From Phyllobates terribilis (Eukaryota), in assembly GCF_046119375.1 (NCBI RefSeq), contig NW_027362769.1, positions 397,296,001-397,360,000 of the forward strand: a DNA stretch of 64,000 bases, given 5' to 3'. Position 1 is the stretch's first letter; the number at the start of each line of letters is the position of its first letter. The notes under the pieces were generated by a model. The model ran no database searches, was not told the origin of the DNA, and saw only the letters and a program-made list of their open reading frames with translations. Position numbers and translations under genes: made by a program. This document shows positions 8,429 through 62,499 of the stretch, piece after piece.

Positions 8429-8654
8429 TTGTTACAGCAGCCCCTTGGCTAAGCTTCTCTTATAGTTATTTTTTAATGGGCAGATGATGACATTTCCCAG
8501 CTATTTCTGTACAGACACTGAACCATAAGGTAATGTTGAGATTTCAGCTGTGAAGCTTGCAGAACTGTTAATGCTGCTTTGCTGTATGATCCGGGCTGTA
8601 ATGTATGAGAAGAGCACGGGATAAGTAATGTGGGTGATGAGAGCCGTCATGTCT

Positions 8655-25639: not shown

Positions 25640-28200
25640 CTCTTCCAGTCGGCGCTCCTCTCGAGCGCGCTCTCACTCTCACCACCCCCCCCTCTCGCTC
25701 TCTCACCCCCCCCCCCCCCGTCGGCGCCCCCCCCTCTCGCTCTCTCACCCCCCCCCCCCCCCGTCGGCGCCCCCCTCGCTCGCTCTCTCTCCCCGTCCGT
25801 CGGCGCCCCACTCGCTCGCTCTCTCTCTCCCCGTCCGTCGGCGCCCCACTCGCTCGCTCTCGCTCTCCCCGTCCGTCGGCGCCCCACTCGCTCGCTCTCC
25901 CCGTCCGTCGGCGCCCCACTCGCTCGCTCTCCCCGTCCGTCGGCGCCCCACTCGCTCGCTCTCCCCGTCCGTCGGCGCCCCACTCGCTCGCTCTCCCCGT
26001 CCGTCGGCGCCCCACTCGCTCGCTCTCCCCGTCCGTCGGCGCCCCACTCGCTCGCTCTCCCCGTCCGTCGGCGCCCCACTCGCTCGCTCTCCCCGTCCGT
26101 CGGCGCCCCACTCGCTCGCTCTCCCCGTCCGTCGGCGCCCCACTCGCTCTCTCTCCCCGTCCGTTGGCGCCCCTCTCGCTCTCTCTCCCCCTCCGTCGGC
26201 GCCCCTCTCGCTCTCTCTCCCTCCGTCGGCGCCCCTCCACTCCCTCTTTCCCTCAGTGCCTGTCTCACACTCGGTAACTGTCTCTCTCGCTCTCTCTCCG
26301 TCAGCGCCCCTTTCGCTCTCTCTCCCTCCGTCGACGCCCCTCTCGCTCTCTCTCCCTCCGTCAGTTCCCCTCCACTCCCTCTTTCCCTCTGTGCCTGTCT
26401 CACACTCGGTATCTGTCTCTCTCTCTTCGTCGGCGCCCCTCTCCATCTCTCCCCCTCCGTCGGCGCCCCTCTCCATCTCTCCCCCTCCGTCGGCGCCCCT
26501 CTCGCTCTCTCCCCCTCCGTCGGCGCCCCTCTCGCTCTCTCCCCCTCCGTCGGCGCCCCTCTCGCTCTCTCCCCCTCCGTCGGCGCCCCTCCACTCCCTC
26601 TTTCCCTCAGTGCCTGTCTCACACTCGGTAACTGTCTCTCTCGCTCTCTCTCCCTCCGTCAGCGCCCCTTTAGCTCTCTCTCCCTCCGTCGGCGCCCCTC
26701 TCGCTCTCTCCCCCTCCGTCGGCGCCCCTCTCGCTCTCTCCCCCTCCGTCGGCGCCCCTCCACTCCCTCTTTCCCTCAGTGCCTGTCTCACACTCAGTAA
26801 CTGTCTCTCTCGCTCTCTCTCCCTCGGTCAGCGCCCCTCTCGCTCTCTCTCCCACCGTTGGCGCCCCTCCCGCTCCCTCTTTCCCTCAGTGCCTGTCTCA
26901 CACTCGGTATCTGTCTCTCTCGCTCTCTCTCCTTCCGTCGGCGCCCCTCTCCCACCGTCAGCTCCCCTTCACTCCCTCAGTGCCTGTCTCACACTCGGTA
27001 ACTGTCTCTCTCGCTCTCTCTCCGTCAGCGCCCCTTTCGCTCTCTCTCCCTCCGTCGACGCCCCTCTCGCTCTCTCTCCCTCCGTCAGCTCCCCTCCAAT
27101 CCCTCTTTTCCTCCGTGCCTGTCTCACACTCTGTATCTGTCTCTCTCCCGCCGTCGGCGCCCCTCTCCATCTCTCCCCCTCCGTCGGCGCCCCTCTCGCT
27201 CTCTCCCCCTCCGTCGGCGCCCCTCCACTCCCTCTTTCCCTCAGTGCCTGTCTCACACTCGGTAACTGTCTCTCTCGCTCTCTCTCCCTCCGTCAGCGCC
27301 CCTCTCGCTCTCTCTCCTTCCGTCGGCGCCCCTCTCGCTCTCTCCCCCTCCGTCGGCGCCCCTCTCGCTCTCTCCCCCTCCGTCGGCGCCCCTCTCGCTC
27401 TCTCCCCCTCCGTCGGCGCCCCTCTCGCTCTCTCCCCCTCCGTCGGCGCCCCTCTCGCTCTCTCCCCCTCCGTCGGCGCCCCTCTCGCTCTCTCCCCCTC
27501 CGTCGGCGCCCCTCCACTCCCTCTTTCCCTCAGTGCCTGTCTCACACTCAGTAACTGTCTCTCTCGCTCTCTCTCCCTCCGTCAACGCCCCTTTCGCTCT
27601 CTCTCCCTCCGTCGGCGCCCCTCTCGCTCTCTCTCCCTCCGTCGGCGCCCCTCTCGCTCTCTCTCCCTCCGTCGGCTCCCCTCTCTCTCTCTCTCTTACT
27701 CCGTCGGCTCCCCTCCACTCCCTCTTTCCCTCAGTGCCTATCTCACACTCGGTAACTGTCTCTCTTGCTCTCTCTCCCTCCGTCAACGCCCCTTTCGCTC
27801 TCTCCGTCGGCGCCCCTCTCCCTCTCTCCCCCTGCACCCCTCTCCCTCCGTCAGCGCCTCTCTCGCTCTCTCTCCCTCCGTGCCCCCCTCCACTCCCTTT
27901 TCCCTCAGTGCCTGTCTCACACTCGGTAACTGTCTCTCTCCCTCCGTCGGTGCCCCTCTCCCTCCACTCCCTTTTCCCTCAGTGCCTGTCTCACACTTGG
28001 TAACTGTCTCTCTCCCTCTGTCGGTGCCCCTCTCCCTCTCTCTCCCTCCGTGCCCCTCCACTCTCTCTTTCCCTCAGTGCCCCTCCACTCTCTCTTTCCC
28101 TCAGTGCCCCTCCACTCTCTCTTTCCCTCAGTGCCTGTCTCACACTCGGTAACTGTCTCTCTCGCTCTCTTCGTCAGTGCTCCTCCCTCTTCATCAATGC
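25640..28200. repeat. Compound CpG-rich/CT-rich minisatellite (30-32-bp units plus a ~50-bp module)
   Basis: ccgtcggcgcccc(a/t)ctcgctc units interspersed with cactccctctttccctcagtgcctgtctcacactcggtaac. Confidence 0.93.
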
Positions 28201-34386: not shown

Positions 34387-34554
34387 ATGTCGGGGAAGGG
34401 TCTGGGGGCTGCGCGGCGCAGGAGGACGCGCTGCCGGAAGTGCGAGGCCTGTGTGCGCAACGAGTGCGGAGAGTGCAACTTCTGCAAGGACATGAAGAAA
34501 TTCGGGGGCCCCGGACGGATGAAGCAGTCCTGCCTGAAGAGGCAGTGCACGGCG
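34387..34554 (+). CDS. FBXL19: FBXL19 CxxC exon (exon starts 34357)
   Basis: ctgcag acceptor at 34356, GAGATGT start, GTAAG donor; 56 aa. Confidence 0.95.
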
Positions 34555-37500
34555 GTAAGGAGGGGGAGGGGGACGGGGGTGACACTGTGGCGGCACAGAG
34601 GGCACGGTAATGACGCCGTTCTCTTTTCCTCCGCAGCCCGTCCTGCCACACACGGCCGTCTGTCTACTGTGTGGAGACGCCGGGAAGGAGGACACCGCGC
34701 AGGATGAGGAGCAAAAGTTCAACCTGTCGCTCATGGAATGTACCATCTGCAACGAGATCGTCCACCCCGGCTGCATCAAGGTACGGCCCGACCAGGGATA
34801 CCGCCACCGTCAAAACATTCAATCCACCCTGCGTTGTAATGTAGGTTTATTAGTAGCATCTACAGACTGGAGGCTTTGCCAGTCCTTCACCAATCCTTTA
34901 CCATGAGCATCGCCGTCCTTTGCCACGAGCACCATCACACTTTTCCTTCAGCTTTCTTGTCCAGTAGAGGTGACCTCTTAGAGATCTCCAGCCATTACTC
35001 TGCCCCTTACTGAATTACCTAAGCCTGGGATTGCTCTCTGGTCTCCTCAGGGATCTGGTGATCACTTCCTGTTTCTCTGGGGATCTGATGAGTTTTCTCC
35101 TCACCTGATGCCACTAATGAGGCCGGGTTGATTAGATCAGGTGCTGGACACCCGGCGCTCACTGAGGAGGCAGATACCGGCTCATGGTAGAGGGGAAGCT
35201 GGAGACGGTGCTGGCAGTCGGTGTAACTTTGTTCTTTTGACTTCAGAGAAGTTTCTCCACTTTGCTGATAGTTTACAGTGTGGGGGAGGGGGTGGATGGT
35301 TGTGATTGCAGCCGATCATAAGGGATCATGGTGAGGAACTGAATAAAGTCCCAAAACATTTCTCCAAATCTTTGCTTCCTGTCAGTGAATGGAAGCACAT
35401 TAGATATGAGAATGTAATCGACGTCTTCTCTCCACAGATGGGTAAAGCTGAAGCCGTTATCGACACGGAAATCCCCAACTGCTGGGAGTGTCCGCGCTGC
35501 GTGAGAGAAGGCCGCACATGTAAGGTAAGTGTGGGGGAAGGGTCTGGGCATAGATCGGGGCTCGGTGGGGTGTAGACCCTGCCCCCGACTGCGGCTCTGG
35601 TGCCGGCTGTGCCCACCTGCAGGTGCGAGGCACAGACTCACAATGTGAGGAGAAAGTCGTCCCCATCTCCTTAGTGAAAGGGAAGGTGAAAATCTGAAAA
35701 CTAAGCATCAGTGTAGTGTAAACCCCAGTGTATGTTGTCATGGATCAGAGATGTGTGTGTGTGTATGTATGTGTGTGTATGGGCCTTGAAAAAGTCTTCA
35801 TGCGCCATGAAGTTTTCCACTTTACGCCTGCAAACTTGCATGTATTTTCTGTGACACCAACACTTAGTAACAATAAAAGAAATGATAGGTGGTGTACTAA
35901 ATGTATAAATCTGACCATTGTGCCGTGCATTAGTCTTCAGCACCTGAGTGAGTACTTTGTAGGACCACCTCTCTGCTGCAGTCTTTTGGCGTCTGTCTCT
36001 CCCAGCTTTGCACATCTAGAGGTGACATTTTGACCCGTCTTCTTTGCACTCTCACTCAGTGATTGGATGGAGACGTCTGTGATAAGTATGTGAGTATCAG
36101 TATCAGTCTGTGATCACATCTTGTCACAGATTCTCTGGGATTTGGGTCTGGACTGTGACTGCGCCGTTCACACATGGGAATATGTTCTGATCTAAACCCT
36201 CCATTGTGGCTCTGCAGGATGTTGAGGGTCGTTGTCCTACACCCCAGTCTCTCTTCTTTTGCAGCCTCTGAGGTTTTCCTCCAGTATTGTCCTGCATCTG
36301 GCTTCATCCATCTTCGCATCACCTCTGACCAGCTTCCCTGCCCCTGCTGAAGAAGCTTCCCCACAGCAGGATGCTGCCACCACCATGTCTGACTGTGGGG
36401 ATGGTGATTTCAGGGTGATGTGCAGTGATAGTTTTCCATCACACGTAGCGTTTTGTTTTTAGCCCAAAAAGTTCTCCTTTGGTCTTATCTGAGCAGAGCC
36501 CCTTCCTCCACATGCTCGCTGTGTCCCCTACATAGAATTTCTTACTACTTTCAAAAATCTTTCTTCTTGCTGCTCTTCCATAAAGACCTGATTTGTGGAG
36601 TATACAACCAATAGTCGTCCTGTGGACAGTCTCCCCTCTGACCTGTGGATCTGCAGCTCCTCCAGTGACCTTGGTTGCTTCTCCTTGCTTGGGATGTCAG
36701 GTTAGGTAGACGGCCATGTCTTCCCAGGTTTGTAGTTGTGCCATACTTCCATTTTTGAATGATGGATTGTTGGTCCCTGAGATGTTCAGAGCTTGGGCTA
36801 TATATTTATATATTTATTTTTTTTTTTAATAACAACCTAACCCTGCTTTCCGCTTCCCCACTACTTTATCCCTGACCTGCCTGGTGGGCTCCTTGGTTTT
36901 CTGCTTTATCCCTGACCTGCCTGGTGGGCTCCTCTGTTTTTCATGAGGCTGTTTGATCCCTAATGTTCTCACACAAACTTCTGAGGTCTTCACAGAACAG
37001 CTGCAGTTATACTGAGAAGAAATCACACCCAGGTGGACGCAATGTACTAATTATGTGACTTCTGGGGGTGATCGGTCACTCAGGATGTTATTTAGGGGGA
37101 TCAGACTACAGGGGGGGCTGAATACTAATGCAAAGAACAACTGTCAGATTTATATATAAATAATTAGAAAACCCAGTATCATTTCCTTTTCATGTCACAA
37201 ATACTTGTTACTTTGTGTGTTGGTGTCACATAAAACCCCAATAAAATACATTTCAGTTTGTAGCTGCAATGTAGAAAAGTTCACGGGGTATGAAGACTTT
37301 ATCAAGGCGCTGAGTGTGTGGGAAGGGGGGGACCACTTTTTGTCTCTTAAAAGATGGTGAAACGAAAATCCCAAGGGTTTTGGTTTTTATTTTTTACTAC
37401 TTTTACACAATTAAAGATGAAATAAACAAGGCATCGCCGTCGTACTGACCCAGAGAATAAAGGGACGGACGGACCAAAAGTTTGGACACACCTTCTCATT

Positions 37501-40500
37501 TAAAGATTTTTCTGTATTTTCATGACTATGAAAATTGTACATTCACGCTGAAGGCATCAAAACTATGAATTACCACATGTGGAATTATATACTCAACAAA
37601 AAAGTGTGAAACAACTGAAAATATGTCTTATATTCTAGGGTCTTCACATTAGCCCCCTTTTGCTTTGATGACTGCTTTGCACACTCTTGGCATTCTCTTG
37701 ATGAGCTTCAAGAGGTAGTCACCGGAAATGGTCTTCACTTCACAGGTGTGCCCTGTCAGGTTTAATAAGTGGGATTTCTTGCCTTATAAATGGGGTTGGG
37801 ACCATCAGTTGTGTTGTGCAGAAGTCAGGTGGATACACAGCTGATAGTCCTACTGCATAGACTGTTAGAATTTGTATTATGGCAAGAAAAAAGCAGCTAA
37901 GTAAAGAAAAACGAGTGGCCGTCATTACTTTACGAAATGAAGGTCAGTCAGTCCGAAAAATTGGGAAAACTTTGAAAGTGTCCCCAAGTGCAGTTGCAAA
38001 AACCATCAAGTTCTACAAAGAAACTGGTTCACATGAGGACCGCCCCAGGAAAGGAAGACCAAGAGTCACCTCTGCTTCTGAGGATAAGTTTATCCGAGTC
38101 ACCAGCCTCAGAAATCGCAGGTTAACAGCAGCTCAGATTAGATACCAGGTCAATGCCACACAGAGTTCTAGCAGCAGACACATCTCTACAACAACTGTTA
38201 AGAGGAGACTTTCTGCAGCAGGCCTTCATGGTAAAATAGCTGCTAGGAAACTACATGCCTGGTTCCCACCGTGAAGCATGCAGGAGGAGGTGTGATGGTG
38301 TGGGGGGGGCTTTGCTGGTGACTCTGTTGGGGATTTATTCAAAATTGAAGGCATACTGAACCAGCATGGCTACCACAGCATCTTGCAGCGGCATGCTATT
38401 CCATCCGGTTTGCGTTTAGTTGGACCATCATTTATTTTTCAACAGGACAATGACCCCAAACAACTCCAGGCTGTGTAAGGGCTATTTGACCAAGAAGGAG
38501 AGTGATGGGGGGCTACGCCAGATGACCTGGCCTCCACAGTCACCAGACCTGAACCCAATCGAGATGGTTTGGGGTGAGCTGGACCGCAGCGTGAAGGCAA
38601 AAGGGCCGACAAGTGCTAAGCATCTCTGGGAACTCCTTCAAGATTGTAGGAAGACCATTTCCGGTGACTACCTCTTGAAGCTCATCAAGAGAATGCCAAG
38701 AGTGTGCAAAGCAGTCATCAAACCAAAAGGTGGCTACTTTGAAGAACCTAGAATATAAGACATATTGTCAGTTGTTTCACACTTTTTTGTTAAGTCTATA
38801 ATTCCACATGTGGTAATTCATAGTTTTGATGCCTTCAGTGTGAATGTACAATTTTCAAAGTCATGAAAATACAGAAAAATCTCTAAATGAGAAGGTGTCC
38901 AAACTTTTGGTCGGTACTGTACATACATACATACATACATACATACATAACGGTGCCACAGTGTGTGTGGAGTCACCAATGTTATCGCATGATGCTCGAG
39001 GTGGACAAAGATGGCATCCATGAGGGCTTCTAGCTGACCCCTGGCTGTAATAACCCATTATCTCCCTGTTGTGGGGGCCCATGGGTGCAGTCGCCCACCC
39101 CAGCATGCAGCCTTTAAAAGACAAAAAAAAAACAGGCTGGTCAATCAGGGTTTAGGAGCGATTCCTCAGGCCGTCCCGTAATCCGGCACGTCTACTCTCG
39201 CTTTTCCGCAGGATCCATTGGACAGTTCAGGTAAACGGCGCTTGGACAACAGAGAAGAAGCCGTGCGGTGGAAACTCACAGACGACCCGGCCCCCGGGAG
39301 GAAGAAGCCCCCCGATGACAACCAGGGACATAAGAGGAAGAAGGAGCCGGTGCAGGAAGCGGGCGTCAAGAAGAAGGTGGGCGCAATGCTCGCGGCTCAT
39401 CCTACGTAGCGCTGTTTTTTTTTTTTTTCGCTCTTATTTGATCCTTTTTCCTTCTGTTTTGCAGGTGAAGGCGGAGAAAGATAAGAAAATCAAAAAGGTG
39501 CGTCCAGCGCGTAGCCACCATATTTGTGCTCTTCCCCCTCTGATCTCAGTGCTGATCCTCTGCCCGGCTCAGAGCCGCCATGTTTGTGCTCTTCCCCCCT
39601 CTGATCTCAGTGCTGATCCTCTGCCCGGCACAGAGCTGCCATGTTTGTGCTCTTCCCCCTCTGATCTCAGTGCTGATCCTCTGCCCGGCACAGAGCCGCC
39701 ATGCTTGTGCTCTTCCCCCTCTGATCTCAGTGCTGATCCTCTGCCCGGCACAGAGCCGCCATGTTTGTGCTCTTCCTTCTCTGATCTCAGTGCTGATCCT
39801 CTGTCTGGTGCAGAGCCGCCATGTTTGTGCTCTCTTCCTCCTGTGATCCTCCGCTCTCTCTCCTCTGTCTGGTGCAGAGCCGCCATGTTTGTGCTCTCTT
39901 CCCCCTGTGATCCTCCGCTCTCTCCTCTGTCTGGTGCAGAGCCGCCATGTTTGTGCTCTCTTCCCCCTGTGATCCTCCGCTCTCTCCTCTGTCTGGTGCA
40001 GAGCCGCCATGTTTGTGCTCTCTTCCTCCTGTGATCCTCCGCTCTCTCCTCTGTCTGGTGCAGAGCCGCCATGTTTGTGCTCTCTTCCCCCCTGTGATCC
40101 TCCGCTCTCTCCTCTGTCTGGTGCAGAGCCGCCATGTTTGTGCTCTCTTCCCCCTGTGATCCTCCGCTCTCTCCTCTGTCTGGTGCAGAGCCGCCATGTT
40201 TGTGCTCTCTTCCCCCTGTGATCCTCCGCTCTCTCCTCTGTCTGGTGCGGAGCCGCCATGTTTGTCCGCTCTCTCCTCTGTCCGGTGCAGAGCTGCCATG
40301 TTTGTTCTCTCTCTCTCTTCCCTCTGATCCTCCGCTCACTCCTCTGTCCGGTGCGGAGCTGCCATGTTTGTGCTGTTCCCCCTCTGATCCTCCGCTCTCT
40401 CCTCTGTCCGGTGCGGAGCTGCCATGTTTGTTCTCTCTCCTCTGTCCGGTGCGGAGCTGCCATGTTTGTTCTCTCTCTTCTCCCTCTGATCCTCCGCTCT

Positions 40501-43500
40501 CTCCTCTGTCTGGTGCGGAGCCGCCATGTTTGTTCTCTCTCTTCTCCCTCTGATCCTCCGCTCTCTCCTCTGTCCGGTGCGGAGCTGCCATGTTAGTTCT
40601 CTCTCTTCTCCCTCTGATCCTCTGCTCTCTCCTCTGTCTGGTGCGGAGCCGCCATGTTTGTTCTCTCTTCTCCCTCTGATCCTCCGCTCTCTCCTCTGTC
40701 TGGTGCGGAGCTGCCATGTTTGTTCTCTCTTCTCCCTCTGATCCTCCGCTCTCTCCTCTGTCCCGTGCGGAGCTGCCATGTTTGTTCTCTCTCTTCTCCC
40801 TCTGATCCTCCGCTCTCTCCTCTGTCCGGTGCGGAGCTGCCATGTTTGTTCTCTCTCTTCTCCCTCTGATCCTCTGCTCTCTCCTCTGTCTGGTGCAGAG
40901 CTGCCATGTTTGTGCTGTTCCCCCTCTGATCCTCTGCTCTCTCCTCTGTCCGGTGCGGAGCTGCCATGTTTGTTCGCTCTCTTCTCCCTCTGATCCTCCG
41001 CTCTCTCCTCTGTCTGGTGCGGAGCTGCCATGTTTGTTCTCTCTCTTCTCCCTCTGATCCTCCGCTCTCTCCTCTGTCCGGTGCGGAGCTGCCATGTTTG
41101 TTCTCTCTCTCTCTTCCCTCTGATCCTCCGCTCTCTCCTCTGTCTGGTGCGGAGCCGCCATGTTTTTGTTCTCTCTTCTCCCTCTGATCCTCCGCTCTCT
41201 CCTCTGTCTGGTGCAGAGCTGCCATGTTTGTTCTCTCTTCTCCCTCTGATCCTCCGCTCTCTCCTCTGTCCCGTGCGGAGCTGCCATGTTTGTTTTCTCT
41301 TCTCCCTCTGATCCTCCGCTCTCTCCTCTGTCCGGTGCGGAGCTGCCATGTTTGTTGTCTCTCTTCTCCCTCTGATCCTCCGCTCTCTCCTCTGTCCGGT
41401 GCAGAGCTGCCATGTTTGTTCTCTCTCTTCTCCCTCTGATCCTCCGCTCTCTCCTCTGTCTGGTGCGGAGCCGCCATGTTTGTTCTCTCTTCTCCCTCTG
41501 ATCCTCCGCTCTCTCCTCTGTCCGGTGCGGAGCTGCCATGTTTGTTCTCTCTCTCTCTTCCCTCTGATCCTCCGCTCTCTCCTCTGTCCGGTGCGGAGCT
41601 GCCATGTTTGTTCTCTCTCTCTCTCTCTCTTCCCTCTGATCCTCCGCTCTCTCCTCTGTCTGGTGCGGAGCCGCCATGTTTTTGTTCTCTCTTCTCCCTC
41701 TGATCCTCCGCTCTCTCCTCTGTCCCGTGCGGAGCTGCCATGTTTGTTTTCTCTTCTCCCTCTGATCCTCCGCTCTCTCCTCTGTCCGGTGCGGAGCTGC
41801 CATGTTTGTTCTCTCTCTTCTCCCTCTGATCCTCCGCTCTCTCCTCTGTCCGGTGCAGAGCTGCCATGTTTGTTCTCTCTCCTCTGTCCGGTGCGGAGCT
41901 GCCATGTTTGTTCTCTCTCTTCTCCCTCTGATCCTCCGCTCTCTCCTCTGTCTGGTGCGGAGCCGCCATGTTTGTTCTCTCTCTTCTCCCTCTGATCCTC
42001 CGCTCTCTCCTCTGTCCGGTGCGAAGCTGCCATGTTAGTTCTCTCTCTTCTCCCTCTGATCCTCTGCTCTCTCCTCTGTCTGGTGCGGAGCCGCCATGTT
42101 TGTTCTCTCTCTTCTCCCTCTGATCCTCCGCTCTCTCCTCTGTCCGGTGCGGAGCTGCCATGTTTGTGCTGTTCCCCCTCTGATCCTCCGCTCTCTCCTC
42201 TGTCCGGTGCGGAGCTGCCATGTTTGTTCTCTCTCTCTTCCCTCTGATCCTCCGCTCTCTCCTCTGTCCGGTGCGGAGCTGCCATGTTTGTTCTCTCTCT
42301 TCTCCCTCTGATCCTCCGCTCTCTCCTCTGTCCGGTGCGGAGCTGCCATGTTTGTTCTCTCTCTTCTCCCTCTGATCCTCCGCTCTCTCCTCTGTCCGGT
42401 GCGGAGATGCCATGTTTGTTCTCTCTCTTCTCCCTCTGATCCTCCGCTCTCTCCTCTGTCCGGTGCGGAGCTGCCATGTTTGTTCTCTCTCTCTCTTCCC
42501 TCTGATCCTCCGCTCTCTCCTCTGTCTGGTGCGGAGCCGCCATGTTTTTGTTCTCTCTTCTCCCTCTGATCCTCCGCTCTCTCCTCTGTCCGGTGCGGAG
42601 CTGCCATGTTTGTTCTCTCTCTTCTCCCTCTGATCCTCTGCTCTCTCCTCTGTCTGGTGCAGAGCTGCCATGTTTGTGCTGTTCCCCCTCTGATCCTCCG
42701 CTCTCTCCTCTGTCCGGTGCGGAGCTGCCATGTTTGTTCTCTCTCCTCTGTCCGGTGCGGAGCTGCCATGTTTGTTCTCTCTCTTCTCCCTCTGATCCTC
42801 CGCTCTCTCCTCTGTCTGGTGCGGAGCCGCCATGTTTGTTCTCTCTCTTCTCCCTCTGATCCTCCGCTCTCTCCTCTGTCCGGTGCGGAGCTGCCATGTT
42901 AGTTCTCTCTCTTCTCCCTCTGATCCTCTGCTCTCTCCTCTGTCTGGTGCGGAGCCGCCATGTTTGTTCTCTCTTCTCCCTCTGATCCTCCGCTCTCTCC
43001 TCTGTCTGGTGCGGAGCTGCCATGTTTGTTCTCTCTTCTCCCTCTGATCCTCCGCTCTCTCCTCTGTCCGGTGCGGAGCTGCCATGTTTGTTCTCTCTTC
43101 TCCCTCTGATCCTCTGCTCTCTCCTCTGTCTGGTGCAGAGCTGCCATGTTTGTGCTGTTCCCCCTCTGATCCTCTGCTCTCTCCTCTGTCCGGTGCGGAG
43201 CTGCCATGTTTGTTCTCTCTCTCTCTTCCCTCTGATCCTCCGCTCTCTCCTCTGTCCGGTGCGGAGCTGCCATGTTTGTTCTCTCTCTCTCTTCCCTCTG
43301 ATCCTCCGCTCTCTCCTCTGTCCGGTGCGGAGCTGCCATGTTTGTTCTCTCTCTCTCTCTTCCCTCTGATCCTCCGCTCTCTCCTCTGTCCGGTGCGGAG
43401 CTGCCATGTTTGTGCTGTTCCCCCTCTGATCCTCCGCTCTCTCCTCTGTCTGGTGCTTAGCTGCCATGTTTGTTCTCTCTCTTCTCCCTCTGATCCTCCG

Positions 43501-46500
43501 CTCTCTCCTCTGTCCAGTGCGGAGCTGCCATGTTTGTTCTCTCTCTCCTCCCTCTGATCCTCCGCTCTCTCCTCTGTCCGGTGCGGAGCTGCCATGTTTG
43601 TTCTCCCTCTGATCCTTTGCTCTCTCCTCTGTCTGGTGCGGAGCCGCCATGTTTGTTCTCTCTCTTCTCCCTCTGATCCTCTGCTCTCTCCTCTGTCTGG
43701 TGCAGAGCTGCCATGTTTGTTCTCTCTCTCCTCCCTCTGATCCTCCGCTCTCTCCTCTGTCTGGTGCAGAGCTGCCATGTTTGTTCTCTCTCTTCTCCCT
43801 CTGATCCTCCGCTCTCTCCTCTGTCCAGTGCGGAGCTGCCATGTTTGTTCTCTCTCTCCTCCCTCTGATCCTCCGCTCTCTCCTCTGTCCGGTGCGGAGC
43901 TGCCATGTTTGTTCTCCCTCTGATCCTTTGCTCTCTCCTCTGTCTGGTGCGGAGCCGCCATGTTTGTTCTCTCTCTTCTCCCTCTGATCCTCTGCTCTCT
44001 CCTCTGTCTGGTGCAGAGCTGCCATGTTTGTGCTGTTCCCCCTCTGATCCTCTGCTCTCTCCTCTGTCCGGTGCGGAGCTGCCATGTTTGTTCTCTCTCT
44101 TCTCCCTCTGATCCTCTGCTCTCTCCTCTGTCTGGTGCAGAGCTGCCATGTTTGTGCTGTTCCCCCTCTGATCCTCTGCTCTCTCCTCTGTCCGGTGCGG
44201 AGCTGCCATGTTTGTTCTCTCTCTTCTCCCTCTGATCCTCCGCTCTCTCCTCTGTCCGGTGCGGAGCTGCCATGTTTGTTCTCTCTCTTCTCCCTCTGAT
44301 CCTCCGCTCTCTCCTCTGTCCGGTGCGGAGCTGCCATGTTTGTTCTCTCTCTCTCTTCCCTCTGATCCTCCGCTCTCTCCTCTGTCTGGTGCGGAGCCGC
44401 CATGTTTTTGTTCTCTCTTCTCCCTCTGATCCTCCGCTCTCTCCTCTGTCTGGTGCGGAGCTGCCATGTTTGTTCTCTCTTCTCCCTCTGATCCTCCGCT
44501 CTCTCCTCTGTCCGGTGCGGAGCTGCCATGTTTGTTCTCTCTCTTCTCCCTCTGATCCTCCGCTCTCTCCTCTGTCCGGTGCGGAGCTGCCATGTTTGTT
44601 CTCTCTCTTCTCCCTCTGATCCTCCGCTCTCTCCTCTGTCCGGTGCGGAGCTGCCATGTTTGTTCTCTCTCTTCTCCCTCTGATCCTCCGCTCTCTCCTC
44701 TGTCTGGTGCGGAGCTGCCATGTTTGTTCTCTCTCTTCTCCCTCTGATCCTCCGCTCTCTCCTCTGTCCGGTGCGGAGCTGCCATGTTTGTTCTCTCTCT
44801 CTCTTCCCTCTGATCCTCCGCTCTCTCCTCTGTCCGGTGCGGAGCTGCCATGTTTGTTCTCTCTCTCTCTTCCCTCTGATCCTCCGCTCTCTCCTCTGTC
44901 TGGTGCGGAGCTGCCATGTTTGTTCTCTCTCTCTCTTCCCTCTGATCCTCCGCTCTCTCCTCTGTCCCGTGCGGAGCTGCCATGTTTGTTCTCTCTCTTC
45001 TCCCTCTGATCCTCCGCTCTCTCCTCTGTCCGGTGCAGAGCTGCCATGTTTGTTCTCTCTCTTCTCCCTCTGATCCTCTGCTCTCTCCTCTGTCTGGTGC
45101 AGAGCTGCCGTGTTTGTGCTGTTCCCCCTCTGATCCTCTGCTCTCTCCTCTGTCCGGTGCGGAGCTGCCATGTTTGTTCTCTCTCTCTCTTCCCTCTGAT
45201 CCTCCGCTCTCTCCTCTGTCCGGTGCGGAGCTGCCATGTTTGTTCTCTCTTCTCCCTCTGATCCTCTGCTCTCTCCTCTGTCTGGTGCGGAGCTGCCATG
45301 TTTGTTCTCTCTCTTCTCCCTCTGATCCTCCGCTCTCTCCTCTGTCCGGTGCGGAGCTGCCATGTTTGTTCTCTCTCTCTCTTCCCTCTGATCCTCCGCT
45401 CTCTCCTCTGTCCGGTGCGGAGCTGCCATGTTTGTTCTCTCTTCTCCCTCTGATCCTCTGCTCTCTCCTCTGTCTGGTGCGGAGCTGCCATGTTTGTTCT
45501 CTCTCTTCTCCCTCTGATCCTCCGCTCTCTCCTCTGTCCGGTGCGGAGCTGCCATGTTTGTTCTCTCTTCTCCCTCTGATCCTCCGCTCTCTCCTCTGTC
45601 CGGTGCAGAGCTGCCATGTTTGTTCTCTCTCTTCTCCCTCTGATCCTCCGCTCTCTCCTCTGTCCGGTGCGGAGCTGCCATGTTTGTTCTCTCTCTTCTC
45701 CCTCTGATCCTCCGCTCTCTCCTCTGTCCGGTGCAGAGCTGCCATGTTTGTTCTCTCTCTTCTCCCTCTGATCCTCTGTCCGGTGCGGAGCTGCCATGTT
45801 TGTTCTCTCTCTTCTCCCTCTGATCCTCTGCTCTCTCCTCTGTCTGGTGCAGAGCTGCCATGTTTGTGCTGTTCCCCCTCTGATCCTCTGCTCTCTCCTC
45901 TGTCCGGTGCGGAGCTGCCATGTTTGTTCTCTCTCTTCTCCCTCTGATCCTCCGCTCTCTCCTCTGTCCGGTGCGGAGCTGCCATGTTTGTTCTCTCTTC
46001 TCCCTCTGATCCTCTGCTCTCTCCTCTGTCTGGTGCGGAGCTGCCATGTTTGTTCTCTCTCTTCTCCCTCTGATCCTCCGCTCTCTCCTCTGTCCGGTGC
46101 GGAGCTGCCATGTTTGTTCTCTCTCTCTCTTCCCTCTGATCCTCCGCTCTCTCCTCTGTCTGGTGCGGAGCCGCCATGTTTTTGTTCTCTCTTCTCCCTC
46201 TGATCCTCCGCTCTCTCCTCTGTCCCGTGCGGAGCTGCCATGTTTGTTTTCTCTTCTCCCTCTGATCCTCCGCTCTCTCCTCTGTCCGGTGCGGAGCTGC
46301 CATGTTTGTTCTCTCTCTTCTCCCTCTGATCCTCCGCTCTCTCCTCTGTCTGGTGCGGAGCCGCCATGTTTGTTCTCTCTTCTCCCTCTGATCCTCCGCT
46401 CTCTCCTCTGTCCGGTGCGGAGCTGCCATGTTTGTTCTCTCTCTCTCATCCCTCTGATCCTCCGCTCTCTCCTCTGTCCGGTGCAGAGCTGCCATGTTTG

Positions 46501-49500
46501 TTCTCTCTCTCTCTTCCCTCTGATCCTCCGCTCTCTCCTCTGTCTGGTGCGGAGCCGCCATGTTTTTGTTCTCTCTTCTCCCTCTGATCCTCCGCTCTCT
46601 CCTTTGTCCGGTGCGGAGCTGCCATGTTTGTTCTCTCTCTCTCTTCCCTCTGATCCTCCGCTCTCTCCTTTGTCCGGTGCGGAGCTGCCATGTTTGTTCT
46701 CTCTCTCTCTTCCCTCTGATCCTCCGCTTTCTCCTCTGTCTGGTGCGGAGCCACCATGTTTTTGTTCTCTCTTCTCCCTCTGATCCTCCGCTCTCTCCTC
46801 TGTCTGTCTGGTGCGGAGCTGCCATGTTTGTTCTCTCTCTTCTCCCTCTGATCCTCCGCTCTCTCCTCTGTCCCGTGCGGAGCTGCCATGTTTGTTCTCT
46901 CTCTTCTCCCTCTGATCCTCTGCTCTCTCCTCTGTCTGGTGCAGAGCTGCCATGTTTGTGCTGTTCCCCCTCTGATCCTCTGCTCTCTCCTCTGTCCGGT
47001 GCGGAGCTGCCATGTTTGTTCTCTCTCTTCTCCCTCTGATCCTCCGCTCTCTCCTCTGTCCGGTGCGGAGCTGCCATGTTTGTTCTCTCTCTCTCTTCCC
47101 TCTGATCCTCCGCTCTCTCCTCTGTCCGGTGCGGAGCTGCCATGTTTGTTCTCTCTCTCTCTCTTCCCTCTGATCCTCCGCTCTCTCCTCTGTCTGGTGC
47201 GGAGCCGCCATGTTTTTGTTCTCTCTTCTCCCTCTGATCCTCCGCTCTCTCCTCTGTCCGGTGCGGAGCTGCCATGTTTGTTCTCTCTCTTCTCCCTCTG
47301 ATCCTCTGCTCTCTCCTCTGTCCGGTGCAGAGCTGCCATGTTTGTTCTCTCTCTTCTCCCTCTGATCCTCTGCTCTCTCCTCTGTCTGGTGCAGAGCTGC
47401 CATGTTTGTGCTGTTCCCCCTCTGATCCTCTGCTCTCTCCTCTGTCCGGTGCGGAGCTGCCATGTTTGTTCTCTCTCTTCTCCCTCTGATCCTCCGCTCT
47501 CTCCTCTGTCCGGTGCGGAGCTGCCATGTTTGTTCTCTCTTCTCCCTCTGATCCTCTGCTCTCTCCTCTGTCTGGTGCGGAGCTGCCATGTTTGTTCTCT
47601 CTCTTCTCCCTCTGATCCTCCGCTCTCTCCTCTGTCCGGTGCGGAGCTGCCATGTTTGTTCTCTCTTCTCCCTCTGATCCTCCGCTCTCTCCTCTGTCCG
47701 GTGCGGAGCTGCCATGTTTGTTCTCTCTCTTCTCCCTCTGATCCTCCGCTCTCTCCTCTGTCCGGTGCGGAGCTGCCATGTTTGTTCTCTCTCTTCTCCC
47801 TCTGATCCTCCGCTCTCTCCTCTGTCCTGTGCGGAGCTGCCATGTTTGTTCTCTCTCTCTCTTCCCTCTGATCCTCCGCTCTCTCCTCTGTCCGGTGCGG
47901 AGCTGCCATGTTTGTTCTCTCTCTCTCTTCCCTCTGATCCTCCGCTCTCTCCTCTGTCCGGTGCGGAGCTGCCATGTTTGTTCTCTCTCTCTCTCTCTCT
48001 CTCTCTTCCCTCTGATCCTCCGCTCTCTCCTCTGTCCGGTGCGGAGCTGCCATGTTTGTTCTCTCTTCTCCCTCTGATCCTCCGCTCTCTCCTCTGTCCG
48101 GTGCGGAGCTGCCATGTTTGTTTTCTCTTCTCCCTCTGATCCTCCGCTCTCTCCTCTGTCCGGTGCGGAGCTGCCATGTTTGTTCTCTCTCTCTCTTCTC
48201 CCTCTCTCTTCTCCCTCTGATCCTCCGCTCTCTCCTCTGTCCGGTGCGGAGCTGCCATGTTTGTTCTCTCTCTCTCTTCTCCCTCTGATCCTCCGCTCTC
48301 TCCTCTGTCCGGTGCGGAGCTGCCATGTTTGTTCTCTCTCTCTCTTCTCCCTCTGATCCTCCGCTCTCTCCTCTGTCCGGTGCGGAGCTGCCATGTTTGT
48401 TCTCTCTCTCTCTTCTCCCTCTGATCCTCCGCTCTCTCCTCTGTCTGGTGCGGAGCCGCCATGTTTGTTCTCTCTCTTCTCCCTCTGATCCTCCGCTCTC
48501 TCCTCTGTCCGGTGCGGAGCTGCCATGTTTGTTCTCTCTCTCTCTTCTCCCTCTGATCCTCCGTTCTCTCCTCTGTCCGGTGCGGAGCTGCCATGTTTGT
48601 TCTCTCTCTTCTCCCTCTGATCCTCCGCTCTCTCCTCTGTCCGGTGCGGAGCTGCCATGTTTGTTCTCTCTCTCTCTCTTCTCCCTCTGATCCTCCGCTC
48701 TCTCCTCTGTCTGGTGCGGAGCCGCCATGTTTGTTCTCTCTCTTCTCCCTCTGATCCTCCGCTCTCTCCTCTGTCCGGTGCGGAGCTGCCATGTTTGTTC
48801 TCTCTCTCTCTTCTCCCTCTGATCCTCCGCTCTCTCCTCTGTCCGGTGCGGAGCTGCCATGTTTGTTCTCTCTCTCTCTTCTCCCTCTGATCCTCCGTTC
48901 TCTCCTCTGTTCTGTGCGGAGCTGCCATGTTTGTTCTCTCTCTTCTCCCTCTGATCCTCCGCTCTCTCCTCTGTCCGGTGCGGAGCTGCCATGTTTGTTC
49001 TCTCTCTCTCTTCTCCCTCTGATCCTCCGTTCTCTCCTCTGTCCGGTGCGGAGCTGCCATGTTTGTTCTCTCTCTTCTCCCTCTGATCCTCCGCTCTCTC
49101 CTCTGTCCGGTGCGGAGCTGCCATGTTTGTTCTCTCTCTCTCTTCTCCCTCTGATCCTCCGTTCTCTCCTCTGTCCGGTGCGGAGCTGCCATGTTTGTTC
49201 TCTCTCTTCTCCCTCTGATCCTCCGCTCTCTCCTCCGTCCGGCAGGAACCGCAGACTCCCTCAGAGCCGGTCCCGGTGACGGATCGCTCCCACCAGCGTG
49301 AGAAGATCGAGCGCTTCAAGCAGATGTGCCAGATGTTGGAGCGCGCGCGCAGCAGCACCTCCAGCTCCAGCTCCGACTCTGATTCTGACTCCGATTCCAA
49401 AGCTTCCCGGGGGAGCAGCGACACCGGGGAAGGGGGTGAGGGCCGATCGTCCAGGATCAGCTTCAGCACCAGCTCTGAGGAAGACGAGGAAGGAGGCGGC

Positions 49501-52500
49501 TCAGCCGCAGACGGACAGAACGGCACCAGAAATGGCAAACAGAAGTCCCCCCGGGGGAACAGCCGGGAGAAGGAGAACCGGAGAGGCGGCGGCGGGGCAG
49601 TCAGGAAAGCAACATGTGGTCGCAACGCAGTGCAGGCCTTGTCCAGGACTCAGATACTAAAGAGGCCGCTGGTGCCGTCTCCGCCCAAACCGCCTCCCCT
49701 CCAGCTAGAGAGACACGTGGTACGACCCCCTCCCCACAGCCCCGAGCCAGACTCCCTGCCATTGGACAGTGGAACGGACCATGTGATGCAGAGGGGAGTC
49801 TGGCTGGCAGTTTTTAGACATTTGGGACAGAAAGAACTTTGTGTCTGTATGCGGGTGTGTCGGACCTGGAACCGGTGGTAAGAGCTGGCGCGGACCTGGG
49901 GAGCCCTGTACACAATGTCCTGATGTCACCAACCCCAGTGTCATTACTGAGCAATGGCAGCCGCCGCTCACTGGTGGCACCTCCTAATCAGCCAGCGCTC
50001 AGGCGCCCCCTAGTGGTGATTAAATGTGCAGAAATACTGGGTCTGTACCACCATAACGTGAGGCCCGAGCAACGGAGTAATGGTCACTTCATAAATAGTA
50101 TTATACTTCAGAGCTGAAATCGCCCAGCATTCTCTGCTTGTTCAGTGTCTGCACAGAGATTTATCTGGTGAACATATTCTGTGAAGTCCTTATACCAGTA
50201 CAGGATAAATGTACACTGTCTACACCAGCAGAATAGTGAGTGCAGCTCTGGAGGATAATACAGGATGTAACTCAGGATCAGTAATGTAATGTATGTACAC
50301 AGTGACTGCACCAGCAGAATAGTGAGTGCAGCTCTGGAGTATAATACAGGATGTAACTCAGGATCAGTAATGTAATGTATGTACACAGTGACTGCACCAG
50401 CAGAATAGTGAGTGCAGCTCTGGAGGATAATACAGGATGTAACTCAGGATCAGTAATGTAATTTATATACACAGTGACTGCACCAGCAGAATAGTGAGTG
50501 CAGCTCTGGAGTATAATACAGGATGTAACTCAGGATCAGTAATGTAATGTATGTACACAGTGACTGCACCAGCAGAATAGTGAGTGCAGCTCTGGAGGAT
50601 AATACAGGAGGTAACTCAGGATCAGTAATGTAATGTATGTACACAGTGACTGCACCAGCAGAATAGTGAGTGCAGCTCTGGAGTATAATACAGGAGGTAA
50701 CTCAGGATCAGTAATGTAATGTATGTACACAGTGACTGCACCAGCAGAATAGTGAGTGCAGCTCTGGGGTATAATACAGGATGTAACTCGGGATCAGTAA
50801 TGTAATGTATGTACACAGTGACTGCACCAGCAGAATAGTGAGCGCAGCTCTGGAGTATAATACAAGATGTAACTCAGGATCTGTAATGTATGTACACAGT
50901 GACTGCACCAGCAGAATAGTGAGCGCAGCTCTGGAGTATAATACAAGATGTAACTCAGGATCAGTAATGTAATGTATGTACACAGTGACTGCACCAGCAG
51001 AATAGTGAGCGCAGCTCTGGAGTATACACAGGACCGGTGATGTCTGTACTTGCTGATCTTTCATGTGCGGTTTATATAACTGTGCAGAAGGACCAGACGC
51101 TGGTTGCATTATCCCTGCTGCCACCACTAGAGGGAGCGCTTTGTACACATCTTCAATACTGCATTATGCATGGGGCTATAATAAGGCTTTGTGCACATAA
51201 TCAGGAATTGCTTGCAGAAATTTCAGCACCTCTTGGCAGCAAAAACTCTGCGGAAAATCTGCAGCGTTTTTGCTTGCGGATTTGCCGTGCTTTTTTTCCA
51301 GTGCATTGTATAGGAGAAACTCACACAGAATGGACGCGCTGCTTCTTTTTCTGCACATGAAATTCAGTCAGTAAAAATCCTGATCCCGTCCACAGAACTT
51401 GCAAAATGTCATAAGAAATCATGTGATAAGGTTTGCAATGCGCTGACAAAACGCACCGTGTGCACATAGCCTGATCTGTCTCCTGCTGATTATTATTTTT
51501 TTTGCATGTGATTTGACTTTTCAGGTGTTGTGATCGGCAGCTATGGACGTCCATCGACCTGAGTAGAAGAAAATCAATCACCCCTCCTATGCTGAGTGGA
51601 ATAGTCCGACGACAACCGGTCAGACTAGACCTGAGCTGGACCAACATATCAGAAAAACAGCTGACGTGGCTGATCCACCGACTGCAGGGTGAGCGGGATG
51701 ATGGGAGTAGTGGCAGAAATGGGGTGGATGATGATGGCTGCTCTTGTGAAGTTTGGGGTGGAGGTGTAGGTGCTGGTGATTCTAATGGTTTGAGCATTGT
51801 CTGGGATGATGGGAGAATGTTCTGCGTCTTGTTGGGAGAAGCAGTAGATGTGACTTGTGGTGGGGGTGGTGACTGTGGTGGTGACTGCGTGGGTTGTGGC
51901 CGAGTCAGCAAAGGGAATAGTATCAAGGTGGGCAAACTGCGGCTGGCCGTGCGGGGGAGGTGAGCAGCGGCTGGCCGTGCGGGGGAGGTGAGCAGCGGGG
52001 GGAGGTGAGCAGCGGCTGGCCGTGCGGGGGAGGTGAGCAGCGGGGGGAGGTGAGCAGCGGCTGGCCGTGCGGGGGAGGTGAGCAGCGGCTGGCCGTGCGG
52101 GGGAGGTGAGCAGCGGCTGGCCGTGCGGGGGAGGTGAGCAGCGGCTGGCCGTGCGGGGGAGGTGAGCAGCGGCTGGCCGTGCGGGGGAGGTGAGCAGCCG
52201 CTGGCCGTGCGGGGGAGGTGAGCAGCGGGGGGAGGTGAGCAGCGGCTGGCCGTGCGGGGGAGGTGAGCAGCGGCTGGCCGTGCGGGGGAGGTGAGCAGCG
52301 GCTGGCCGTGCGGGGGAGGTGAGCAGCGCTTGGAGACCATTGATGACCTCTTCTCTCCTCCCTCAGGACTGAAGGAGCTGCTGCTCGCCGGCTGCACATG
52401 GATGGCGGTCTCCTCGCTCTGGACCACCACATTCCCCTGCCTGTCTTTACTTGACCTCGGCTGGGTACAAGGGATGAAAACCTCGCACCTCCGAGAGCTG

Positions 52501-58856: not shown

Positions 58857-60159
58857 TACATGATAAGATTCTGTCTGCAGTCACCACTAGGGGGAGCTCT
58901 CTGTATACAGAGATACATGATGAGATTCTGTCTGCAGCCACCACTAGGGGGAGCTCCCTGTATACAGAGATACATGATAAGATCCTGTCTGCAGCCACCA
59001 CTAGGGGGAGCTCCCTGTATACAGAGATACATGATAAGATTCTGTCTGCAGCCACCACTAGGGGGAGCTCCCTGTATACAGAGATACATGATAAGATCCT
59101 GTCTGCAGCCACCACTAGGGGGAGCTCCCTGTATACAGAGATACATGATAAGATCCTGTCTGCAGCCACCACTAGGGGGAGCTCTCTGTATACAGAGATA
59201 CATGATGAGATTCTGTCTGCAGCCACCACTAGGGGGAGCTGTCTGTATGAAATATAGATAAGATATGACAGGGGAAAAAAGTCTGGAGAGGAAACAGCTG
59301 TTTGTAGGAGATTGAGGTGTCTGGAGGGGACAGAGGGGTCTTGAAGGGTATTCAGAAGTATAGAAATGACAATTTATTTTGTTGGGAGTAGAGTTCAGAG
59401 TGGGACAAATGTGTATGGAGAGGACTCAGGAGTCTGGTAGGAGTTACAAAAAAAAAGTCTTAGGAGGACAGAAGAATCTGGAGGGACAAAAAAATCTGGA
59501 GACCGAGTCTCGAAAGTACAAAAGATACTGTATGTAGAGGACAGAAGGGCCTGAAGAGGTCAGAGGAGTCTGATGGGAACAGAAGAGTCTGTTAGGAGAT
59601 CGGGAAAGAAGGACGAGTGTAGAGGAACTGACTTTTGGAGGAGAAAGGGAGTCTTCAGGAAACACGTGTCTGGAGTGGTCCATAGAGTCTGAAGGAGACA
59701 TAGATGGCTAGAAAACACAAAAGAGGTGTCTGGAGTGGACAGTGGAGCCTAGAAAGCATAGAAGGGTCTGCAAAGAGAGTATCATAGTAGTTGGAGTCTG
59801 GGGAAGGACAAAGGAGACCTGGGGGACAGGAAAATCTGGAGCATACCGGGGTATAAAGGCCAGAGAGGTGTGTAGAGTAGACATATTTGCTTGAAGGGGA
59901 CCGAGGAGCCTCGAGGAGACGGAGGTCTGTAGTAAACAGAGAAGTCTACAGAGGACAGAAGGGTCTGGAGTCAGCAATGGAGCCTGGAGTGGACAGGAAT
60001 AGGGAGGGGATAGAAAGGTCAGAAGAGTCATGAGGGAAGAAAGAAGTCTGGTGGAGGCAGAGGAGTCAACTAGGAGACAGGGTGAGGGCATAAAAGTGTA
60101 GAAGGACAGACAAGTCTAGAGGGGACAGGGAGTCTCAGGTGTCTGGAGAGAATGCAGGA

Positions 60160-61120
60160 GTCTGGAGGGGACAGAAGAGTCTACAAAAGACAGAGGGGTC
60201 TGGAGGGGACAGAAGAGTCTCCAAAAGACAGAGGGGTCTGGAGGGGACAGAAGAGTCTCCAAAAGACAGAGGGGTCTGGAGGGGACAGAAGAATCTACAA
60301 AAGACAGAGGGGTCTGGAGGGGACAGAAGAGTCTACAAAAGACAGAAGGGTCTGGAGGGGACAGAAGAATCTCCAAAAGACAGAGGGGTCTGGAGGGGAC
60401 AGAAGAATCTACAAAAGACAGAGGGGTCTGGAGGGGACAGAAGAGTCTACAAAAGACAGAGGGGTCTGGAGGGGACAGAAGAGTCTACAAAAGACAGAGG
60501 GGTCTGGAGGGGACAGAAGAGTCTCCAAAAGACAGAGGGGTCTGGAGGGGACAGAAGAGTCTACAAAAGACAGAGGGGTCTGGAGGGGACAGAAGAGTCT
60601 ACAAAAGACAGAGGGGTCTGGAGGGGACAGAAGAGTCTACAAAAGACAGAGGGGTCTGGAGGGGACAGAAGAGTCTACAAAAGACAGAGGGGTCTGGAGG
60701 GGACAGAAGAGTCTCCAAAAGACAGAGGGGTCTGGAGGGGACAGAAGAGTCTCCAAAAGACAGAGGGGTCTGGAGGGGACAGAAGAGTCTACAAAAGACA
60801 GAGGGGTCTGGAGGGGACAGAAGAGTCTCCAAAAGACAGAGGGGTCTGGAGGGGACAGAAGAGTCTCCAAAAGACAGAGGGGTCTGGAGGGGACAGAAGA
60901 GTCTACAAAAGACAGAGGAGTCTGGAGGGGACAGAAGAGTCTACAAAAGACAGAGGGGTCTGGAGGGGACAGAAGAGTCTCCAAAAGACAGAGGGGTCTG
61001 GAGGGGACAGAAGAGTCTACAAAAGACAGAGGGGTCTGGAGGGGACAGAAGAGTCTACAAAAGACAGAGGGGTCTGGAGGGGACAGAAGAGTCTACAAAA
61101 GACAGAGGGGTCTGGAGGGG
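60160..61120. repeat. 38-bp purine-rich array, preceded by degenerate related DNA from ~59280
   Basis: gacagaggggtctggaggggacagaagagtctacaaaa. Confidence 0.95.
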
Positions 61121-62499
61121 GCAAAATTCTGAGATTTTGGCCTCCTTTTACATTGTGATAGGATGACAATATTCCGTGAGCTGTAGATGCAGCTGCCTGA
61201 CATTAATGCCTGACATGCTGCTGTCATACTATCAGTCATTCAGCCATGTTGGGTCCCGGCGTGCAGCGATCCGCTCGTCCTGTTTGTATATGGCTGGAGG
61301 ATGAATTCCTGCAGGAAGGGGGGGGTGTCGTCACAGTGAGTCAGGCAGCTCTGATAGCGGCGGGTGACATCATGTTTTGCTTCGCAGTCTTGATTTCTAT
61401 TATTCTATGCTGTGTCATAAAAGCTGGAGAATTCCCAATGTGTCACCCCCCCCCCCCCGAGACCCAGCTACGACAGGACGCCCCTTCCAGACGTCTACTC
61501 TCCCCCAATACATGTCTTATGGAGGGGCTTTTCCGGGGTATATGTCTGAAAGTGTGACCCCCTTGTGGCTGATTTCCATCAAATACCACTTATCCTGATA
61601 GAGGGTCACAGCGCCAAGGTTAAAGGGGGATGAGGACAACCTCCGCCACCGCCGGCAGCACCCCACAGTATGAAACAGGTGTCAGACCTATGACCTCCTA
61701 GCTGCTGAAAAACTGCAGCCCCCCAGACAATGCACCGGAGGGAGACCACCACTCTATGGTGTGCGTGCCCTTGATTATATTTGAGAGTATGGCGGAGAGT
61801 TTGTTTACCCCGGCGGGGCACTGGCACGGCTCCGCAGCCTCCATCACCCCGTCCCATGGCTGGCGCAGTGGTGGGTGGCGGTGGCACTTATCACCTGCCG
61901 GTATCAGGTAGCGATTCACGGGACGTCAGGCATGAAGTGTAATTACATGTTTCACGTGTGTACGTGTGTTTTACACCAGGTTTGTGCCAAATCCCTGGGA
62001 GGGGAAGGCGGGCGACTCATATAATACCTCTAAGGGGGGTGAAGGATGGTAACCCAACTCCTGCAACGCTTCATTGTCTTGGCACCACTTCCGTCAGCGA
62101 GGTGACGGCTCTGGGGGGTGAGGGCTGGCGAGGGGGCCACGAGTCACTAGTCAGGTGTATTTGGGCTTCTTTGGATGGGACACCTCGCCGCCCCCTGTAC
62201 ATACCTTCCCCTCGAGTCAGCGCCCAACTCTCCTCCTCCTCCTGGATTTCTTAGAAGGAAGCAGGAATCACAGCCGAGGAGCGGAGAATGGGGATTCCTT
62301 TCTGAGGCAGCACGGCAGGGGGTGTGTGACGTCTACAGATTACTACACCGGGAAAAGGACATGGGGGGTGGAGGGGACAGGTATAAAGGCCGCTCACCCG
62401 CAGGGCAGGTGGAGCACTGGTACAGGGAGCTGATGCAGGATGCTGGCAGGGGCAGGTGAGTCCCATCTCCACACTGAGAGTATGAATGAAAGTGGTGGT

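Follow-up and report, generated by a model that had tools for sequence, protein, structure and literature searches.

In intron 7 of the human F7 gene, a variable number of tandem repeats (VNTR) with a 37-bp unit begins with an element that spans the exon-intron boundary and supplies the real donor, and the pseudo-sites of the array are silent (Borensztajn et al. 2006, PMC1557585). In amphioxus, minisatellite-like duplications of intron-exon boundaries, called 'mirages', occur in Adh3 and globin genes, in some cases on the acceptor side, and leave splicing undisturbed (Ebner et al. 2010, PMC3087553). Expanded CAG repeats, in turn, create splice acceptors and give aberrant RNAs (bioRxiv 10.1101/2023.10.16.562581). 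Here we describe an intron of the FBXL19 gene of the frog Phyllobates terribilis, located in a 64,000-nt stretch of the forward strand (assembly GCF_046119375.1, contig NW_027362769.1, positions 397,296,001 to 397,360,000), which is referred to as the window; all positions given below are those of the window, and FBXL19 with its exons and introns lies on the plus strand. A single tandem minisatellite with a unit of 60–68 bp (39513–49242, plus strand) occupies this intron from position +16 to the acceptor AG. We regard the array as a tolerated minisatellite, and as an extreme acceptor-side relative of the F7 VNTR and the amphioxus mirages.

The intron (39498–49245) is 9748 nt in length and of phase 0; its sense strand is composed of 5% A, 38% C, 19% G and 37.5% T. 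The donor, AAAAAG|GTGCGT at 39497/39498, opens a 15-nt leader (39498–39512), which is followed directly by the first unit. The sequence-only reading of this DNA, which had described a short unique leader after the donor and a ~9.7-kb intron consisting almost wholly of repeat, was correct on both points. Bases 39502–39512 of the leader are similar to the tail of the unit; counted by hand, GTCCAGCGCGTAGCCACC and the unit junction GTCCGGTGCGGAGCTGCC agree at 13 of 18 positions. Tandem Repeats Finder reported the array at 39556–49242 (period 64, 151 copies, 87% matches, score 11096), with a 62-bp variant block beginning at 39513. Splitting the array at the AGCYGCCATG motif yielded 153 units of 68 distinct types, whose modal lengths are 64, 62, 66, 60 and 68 nt. 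The types recur in higher-order runs, for example 22-23-24-25.

Three zones can be told apart. The first (39513–39813) is formed by five diverged ~60-nt edge units of variant A (...CTGATCTCAGTGCTGATCCTCTGCCCGGCACAG), all ending in CAG. It is followed by seven units of 62–64 nt (39814–40250) that belong to variant B (CTGTGATCC...GTCTGGTGCAG), six of which end in CAG. The main body (40251–49183) contains ~140 units of 60–68 nt, a few of them shortened to 38–40 nt, arranged in higher-order blocks; 19 end in CAG and the others in CGG. Identity to the commonest unit is 82% in the first block of 15 units and 93–95.5% in the later blocks. Head-to-tail units of ~10–100 bp in many copies, internal variants, higher-order blocks and a diverged 5′ edge are the marks of a minisatellite, and all are present; different from the 5′ edge, the 3′ edge is not diverged. 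No copy of the unit was found outside the array on either strand of the window, and the 27-nt unit core had no match in a metagenome scan, whose collections hold no frog genomes. The antisense 'open reading frames' of up to 2818 aa that run across the array (40336–48792, minus strand) were rejected as an artefact to be expected where T makes up ~5% of a strand, and they do not argue for a gene.

The last unit (49184–49245) is the functional 3′ splice site. It contains the branch-point-like CTGAT at 49215–49219, whose A at 49218 is 27 nt upstream of the exon, a pyrimidine tract at 49220–49241 and the AG at 49244–49245, and the intron ends with ...CTCTGATCCTCCGCTCTCTCCTCCGTCCGGCAG|GAA at 49245/49246. 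The zone from 49184 to 49244 is free of AG, the preceding one being located at 49184. Compared to the commonest unit type (21 copies), the last unit matches at 59 of 62 positions; the first 52 nt are all identical, and the differences after them comprise one T/C, a 2-nt gap and one G/A. The working acceptor thus draws its branch-point-like motif and its pyrimidine tract from an ordinary array unit, as the sequence-only reading had claimed in calling the last unit itself the acceptor, and the junction at this AG is used in RNA.

The splicing of the intron was followed in Logan contigs of four RNA runs (four studies, three organisms), which were aligned to 49100–50100. Runs X1 and X15 come from two studies of P. 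terribilis, whereas X5 and X9 come from two related organisms with ~30 substitutions in the exon. In X1 and X15, one long contig spans 49244–49879, and its left end continues into TGAAGGCGGAGAAAGATAAGAAAATCAAAA, which is exactly 39466–39495 in the upstream microexon; the AG at the junction fits both the end of the microexon and the acceptor side. The same microexon-to-49246 junction is present in X5 and X9. Contigs of 2251–2893 nt cover the 632-nt exon from end to end and extend into the flanking exons, and the corresponding KKIKK|EPQ join also occurs in protein CAJ0952856.1 of Ranitomeya imitator. The junction 39497|49246 is therefore real and common to three species, and regular splicing is kept. 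Following RNA from the 39497 donor had been suggested as a check; in the assembled contigs, only the canonical join to 49246 was found, and no join of the donor to an inner unit. X1 also contains short array unitigs, which indicates that unspliced RNA is present; in this run, the loose ends within the aligned part of the array are other unit variants (CATGTTTGTGCTG) and carry no letters of the microexon.

These features allow a close comparison with the described systems. Like the F7 VNTR, the FBXL19 array is a minisatellite at a splice boundary, in which an end element gives the authentic site and the other elements carry pseudo-sites. However, the F7 VNTR lies on the donor side and its pseudo-sites are identical to the authentic one, whereas the FBXL19 array lies on the acceptor side and its ~153 units fill the intron. 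Different from F7, the FBXL19 units contain no detectable exon sequence, only 30 of them keep CAG, and the true site departs from them in its last 12 nt. The true site ends in CCGTCCGGCAG|G; the units end in CTGTCCGGTGCGGAG|C (~120 units) or ...GTGCAG|A (26 units), and the pseudo-sites are thus not identical in sequence to the authentic site. With the mirages, the FBXL19 array shares tandem copies that include the 3′ end of the intron with its AG, normal splicing, and inner units that evolve in concert while the boundary units stay outside homogenisation. Mirage units, however, span the boundary and hold part of the exon, and they are present in 3–6 copies (BflGb6). The FBXL19 unit does not span the boundary in this manner: it shows no significant similarity to the exon, and its 153 copies form the intron itself. 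As in expanded CAG repeats, a nearby donor faces numerous candidate AG acceptors in repeat DNA; there the candidates are actually used, whereas the assembled FBXL19 RNA contains the canonical junction only.

The array, which abuts the authentic acceptor, holds 45 YAG and 137 GGTGCRG sites. Acceptor quality was judged by the base at −3, the pyrimidine fraction and the distance to the branch-point-like motif. The sequence-only reading had placed a branch-point-like CTGAT and a pyrimidine tract in all of ~150 units, which agrees with the 148 CTGAT motifs counted in the array and the seven further units with CTGTGAT. It had also stated that many units end in gtgCAGag, and this holds for a minority: CAG stands at the acceptor-equivalent place in 30 of the 152 inner units (26 GTGCAG, three CACAG and one CTCAG), whereas ~120 inner units have GTGCGG, so that the first AG past the branch-point-like motif is a poor GAG. 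The first 11 units all have CAG and 19 more are scattered along the array; these CAGs end between 39572 and 47394, and the 29 units (1851 nt) nearest the true acceptor are all without one. Ahead of the decoy CAGs the pyrimidine fraction is 0.75, compared to 0.80 at the true site. For 27 of the CAG decoys, a donor-like G|GTGCRG follows 54–60 nt downstream, which makes pseudo-exons possible. The view that splicing has to single out the final one among numerous near-identical acceptors is overstated, as four fifths of the units, including the 29 nearest the acceptor, have no CAG; ~30 good decoys remain.

As to its origin, we hold it moderately probable that the array originated in place as an intronic minisatellite, by which a short FBXL19 intron swelled to 9.7 kb. 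The ancestral intron would have been ~75–100 nt in length, and the unit would represent nearly the whole of its interior, including the branch-point-like CTGAT and pyrimidine tract as well as the bases just ahead of the AG. The unit may then have been raised to ~153 copies by slippage or unequal exchange, with the 5′ edge retaining old diverged units and the 3′ end remaining uniform to within 12 nt of the exon. A short ancestor is plausible because two other FBXL19 introns are 82 and 88 nt in length and the 15-nt leader plus one unit amounts to ~77 nt. The old 5′ edge, set against the alike remainder, suggests that growth or homogenisation was polarised toward the 3′ end. Regarding the choice of the acceptor, the last AG alone precedes a genuine exon, which contains purine-rich sequence and has a strong donor, and exon definition would favour this last site. 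The CGG that replaces CAG in four fifths of the units, leaving a poor GAG, would act in the same direction. PTB-type repressors are likely to bind the CU-rich units (446 CUCUCU and 133 UCUU), which lack enhancer-like sequence. As a whole, the array is most likely functionless and tolerated.

Growth in place is the simplest reading because the flanks leave no space for foreign ends, the start of the exon is conserved and the sister introns are 82 and 88 nt in length. These points bear directly on the alternative of a foreign seed, in which an array from elsewhere, for example from a different satellite or from the internal tandem repeats of a transposon, landed in the ancestral intron and grew there, the original 3′ end being lost by deletion or conversion and an acceptor-like unit taking over. 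Transposon ends, inverted repeats or target duplications cannot fit into the 15 nt that are available at the 5′ end and the 0 nt at the 3′ end. As the EPQ start of the exon is kept in Ranitomeya and in the RNA of the two related species, a take-over must also have placed the AG exactly, and the remainder of the window yielded no copy of the unit. On the other hand, the units are acceptor-like by composition alone, which makes a take-over mechanistically possible, and neither the flanking exon nor the neighbouring intron is significantly similar to them. Taken together, we regard a foreign seed as unlikely.

Several observations weigh against an origin in place and against the account of site choice that goes with it. 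When the unit was compared to the first 60 nt of the exon by local alignment to doubled units, the p values against shuffles were 0.06 and 0.66, and the best match was off the boundary; the comparison to the neighbouring 88-nt intron gave no significant similarity either (p 0.34–0.8). Nothing ancestral anchors the unit, because it resembles neither the start of the exon nor the neighbouring intron, and the case for an origin in place is one of parsimony alone. A descent of the unit from the exon start or the 88-nt intron was accordingly rejected, as the hand alignment of CAG|GAACCGC to CAGAGCCGC (5/6 after a gap) is within chance. The CAG-free zone beside the acceptor may result from recent copying of CGG units alone, with no disarming of decoys. 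The contigs speak against abundant decoy use, but rare forms are lost when contigs are built, and nonsense-mediated decay would conceal such products. In X1, the summed depth of the array is ~2300–2480, compared to 7.2 in the next intron, which corresponds roughly to ~330 copy equivalents; this is ~2x the depth of 153 copies, and the array may be longer in that animal or have copies elsewhere. The inflation of a short intron by its own interior, as inferred in the sequence-only reading, is thus supported in part: one array fills the intron, the working acceptor uses the motif and tract of a unit and a short ancestor is plausible. As to the direction of descent, the array may come from the acceptor or the acceptor from the array.

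The excess depth in X1 also favours a reading in which a genuine repeat has been assembled with an artefactual length, order or copy number, as does the fact that units with 93–95% identity are hard to assemble. However, the array is not a collapsed uniform tract, since its 68 unit types stand in ordered higher-order blocks. Sequences of array units were found in an independent RNA run with 0–2 differences, and the RNA junction confirms both borders. We therefore consider a misstated array to be improbable.

Most of the differences between units fall on four CpG sites, CTC[C/T]GC, GTC[C/T]GG, TGC[G/A]G and AGC[C/T]GCC, and the observed/expected ratio of CpG in the array is 0.53. The unit variation looks like ordinary neutral CpG transitions. 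The variant that creates CAG has 19% A, compared to 20% T at CTC[C/T]GC. A naive calculation gives a chance of ~0.015 that CAG is missing from all of the last 29 units, which are, however, copies of one another. Selection against decoy CAGs was therefore rejected as unsupported, because A is about as frequent as T at the other CpG site and the units are not independent. We also considered a per-unit hairpin (CTCCGC/GCGGAG) that masks the decoy AG; it was rejected, as the fold of the units is not more stable than that of shuffled sequences (z −0.85 to −1.17). T-A co-variation at the hairpin sites has a Fisher p of 0.008, but unpaired control CpG pairs reach 0.0002 and 0.002, and the co-variation is lost once identical units are counted once (p 0.21). 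The associations between sites are due to shared descent of units and not to RNA pairing.

The same data bear on a reading in which the array is a selected regulatory element, its ~150 CU-rich units serving as a sink or platform for PTB/PCBP/CELF-type proteins, or as a delay in transcription time, that tunes FBXL19 expression or inclusion of the microexon. Microexons are often controlled by intronic pyrimidine-rich elements, and the array is located directly downstream of a 33-nt microexon. The density of motifs is very high as well, with the CUCUCU counted above, 577 UCUCU and 118 UGUUUGUU. However, variation of the kind expected from neutral CpG decay, and a per-unit hairpin no more stable than shuffles (z about −1), do not fit such an element, and the many arrays of unrelated sequence in the window point to a genome-wide mutational habit. 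A regulatory role is, in our view, very improbable.

The locus offers a natural test of 3′ splice-site choice: ~30 CAG decoys, which have branch-point-like motif and pyrimidine tract in common with the real site, are transcribed up to 9.6 kb before it, and the last site alone is present in the assembled RNA. This last-site-only pattern argues against a 'first come, first served' rule and for exon definition. It also illustrates that tandem repeats can enlarge an intron ~100-fold in a large frog genome without transposons. The practical weight of the array is modest, as it is most likely neutral and one of many in the genome. A broader possibility is that intron 3′ ends, with their branch point and pyrimidine tract, are preferred seeds of minisatellites in this frog lineage and that short introns of housekeeping genes have thereby been enlarged, repeatedly and in independent events, to acceptor-like arrays of several kilobases. 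We regard such seeding as rather doubtful; if true, it would provide a route of genome enlargement separate from transposons, and natural experiments on how hundreds of upstream decoys are ignored.

The host gene was assigned by exon-by-exon Pfam searches, in which the domain order, a CXXC zinc finger followed by PHD, F-box and LRR-like exons, is that of FBXL19. The zf-CXXC domain is located at 34387–34554 (1.6e-16), and PHD_4 is encoded by 34637–34780 and 35438–35524 (1.5e-16). The best named relatives are the F-box/LRR-repeat protein 19 of alligator, goshawk and elephant. The start Met is 8 residues ahead of the CXXC domain; judged from this start codon and the relatives, the gene appears to have no upstream JmjC exon. 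Upstream of the array intron, a 165-nt coding exon (39212–39376) has an open frame, residues that are also present in CAJ0952856.1, and splice signals that were read from the sequence. It is separated by the repeat-free 88-nt intron (39377–39464), which served as the size model for the ancestral neighbouring intron, from the 33-nt microexon (39465–39497, phase 0). The microexon is supported by the loose ends of RNA contigs in the four runs (39466–39495), and its peptide is joined to EPQ in CAJ0952856.1. Downstream, the 632-nt coding exon (49246–49877, EPQTPSEP...RTWNRW) contains the start of the F-box (Pfam F-box-like, 7.3e-06; F-box, 2.2e-05). It is followed by a 1647-nt intron (49878–51524), the borders of which were read from the sequence, and a 164-nt exon (51525–51688), into which RNA contigs continue at 51525.

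Two side observations concern the gene. At residues ~180–194 of the Ranitomeya imitator protein CAJ0952856.1, the FBXL19 frame is lost after ...QMCQMLER and replaced by CAQQHIQLQLRLRF, which fits a +1-shifted reading of the serine-rich stretch at 49350–49400 of the window; this departure probably reflects an indel, either in the assembly or in the gene model of that entry. In the 3.7-kb FBXL19 intron at 35525–39211, two open reading frames of 131 and 112 aa (37879–38758, plus strand) look by eye like the N-terminal and C-terminal portions of a Tc1/mariner-type transposase.

Besides the FBXL19 array, at least ten further minisatellite arrays occur in the window, about a third of which is tandem repeat. 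One of these arrays, at 6–8429, is built of 99 copies of an 86-bp unit and is 8.4 kb in length. The same 86-bp unit forms, in the opposite orientation, a 0.8-kb array (50209–51033) inside the FBXL19 intron 49878–51524; this unit is a dispersed, array-building repeat family. Arrays with unrelated units of 25–40 bp are located at 9788–10712, 12276–16115, 21169–22167, 25779–28047, 60156–61120 and 62493–64000. The arrays of the window include 3.8 kb of a 40-bp unit and 2.3 kb of a ~32-bp CT-rich unit. Like the FBXL19 array, the stretches 9935–10712 and 25779–28047 are strongly C/T-rich on the plus strand. A 28-bp minisatellite of ~14 copies (51939–52328) lies in the 678-nt FBXL19 intron 51689–52366 and starts 250 nt into it. 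Its unit, GGGGAG|GTGAGCAGCGG, contains a consensus-like donor, GGAG|GTGAGC, and AGGTGAGC is common to the unit and the true donor at 51688/51689; this 28-bp array is the donor-like counterpart of the acceptor-like FBXL19 array.

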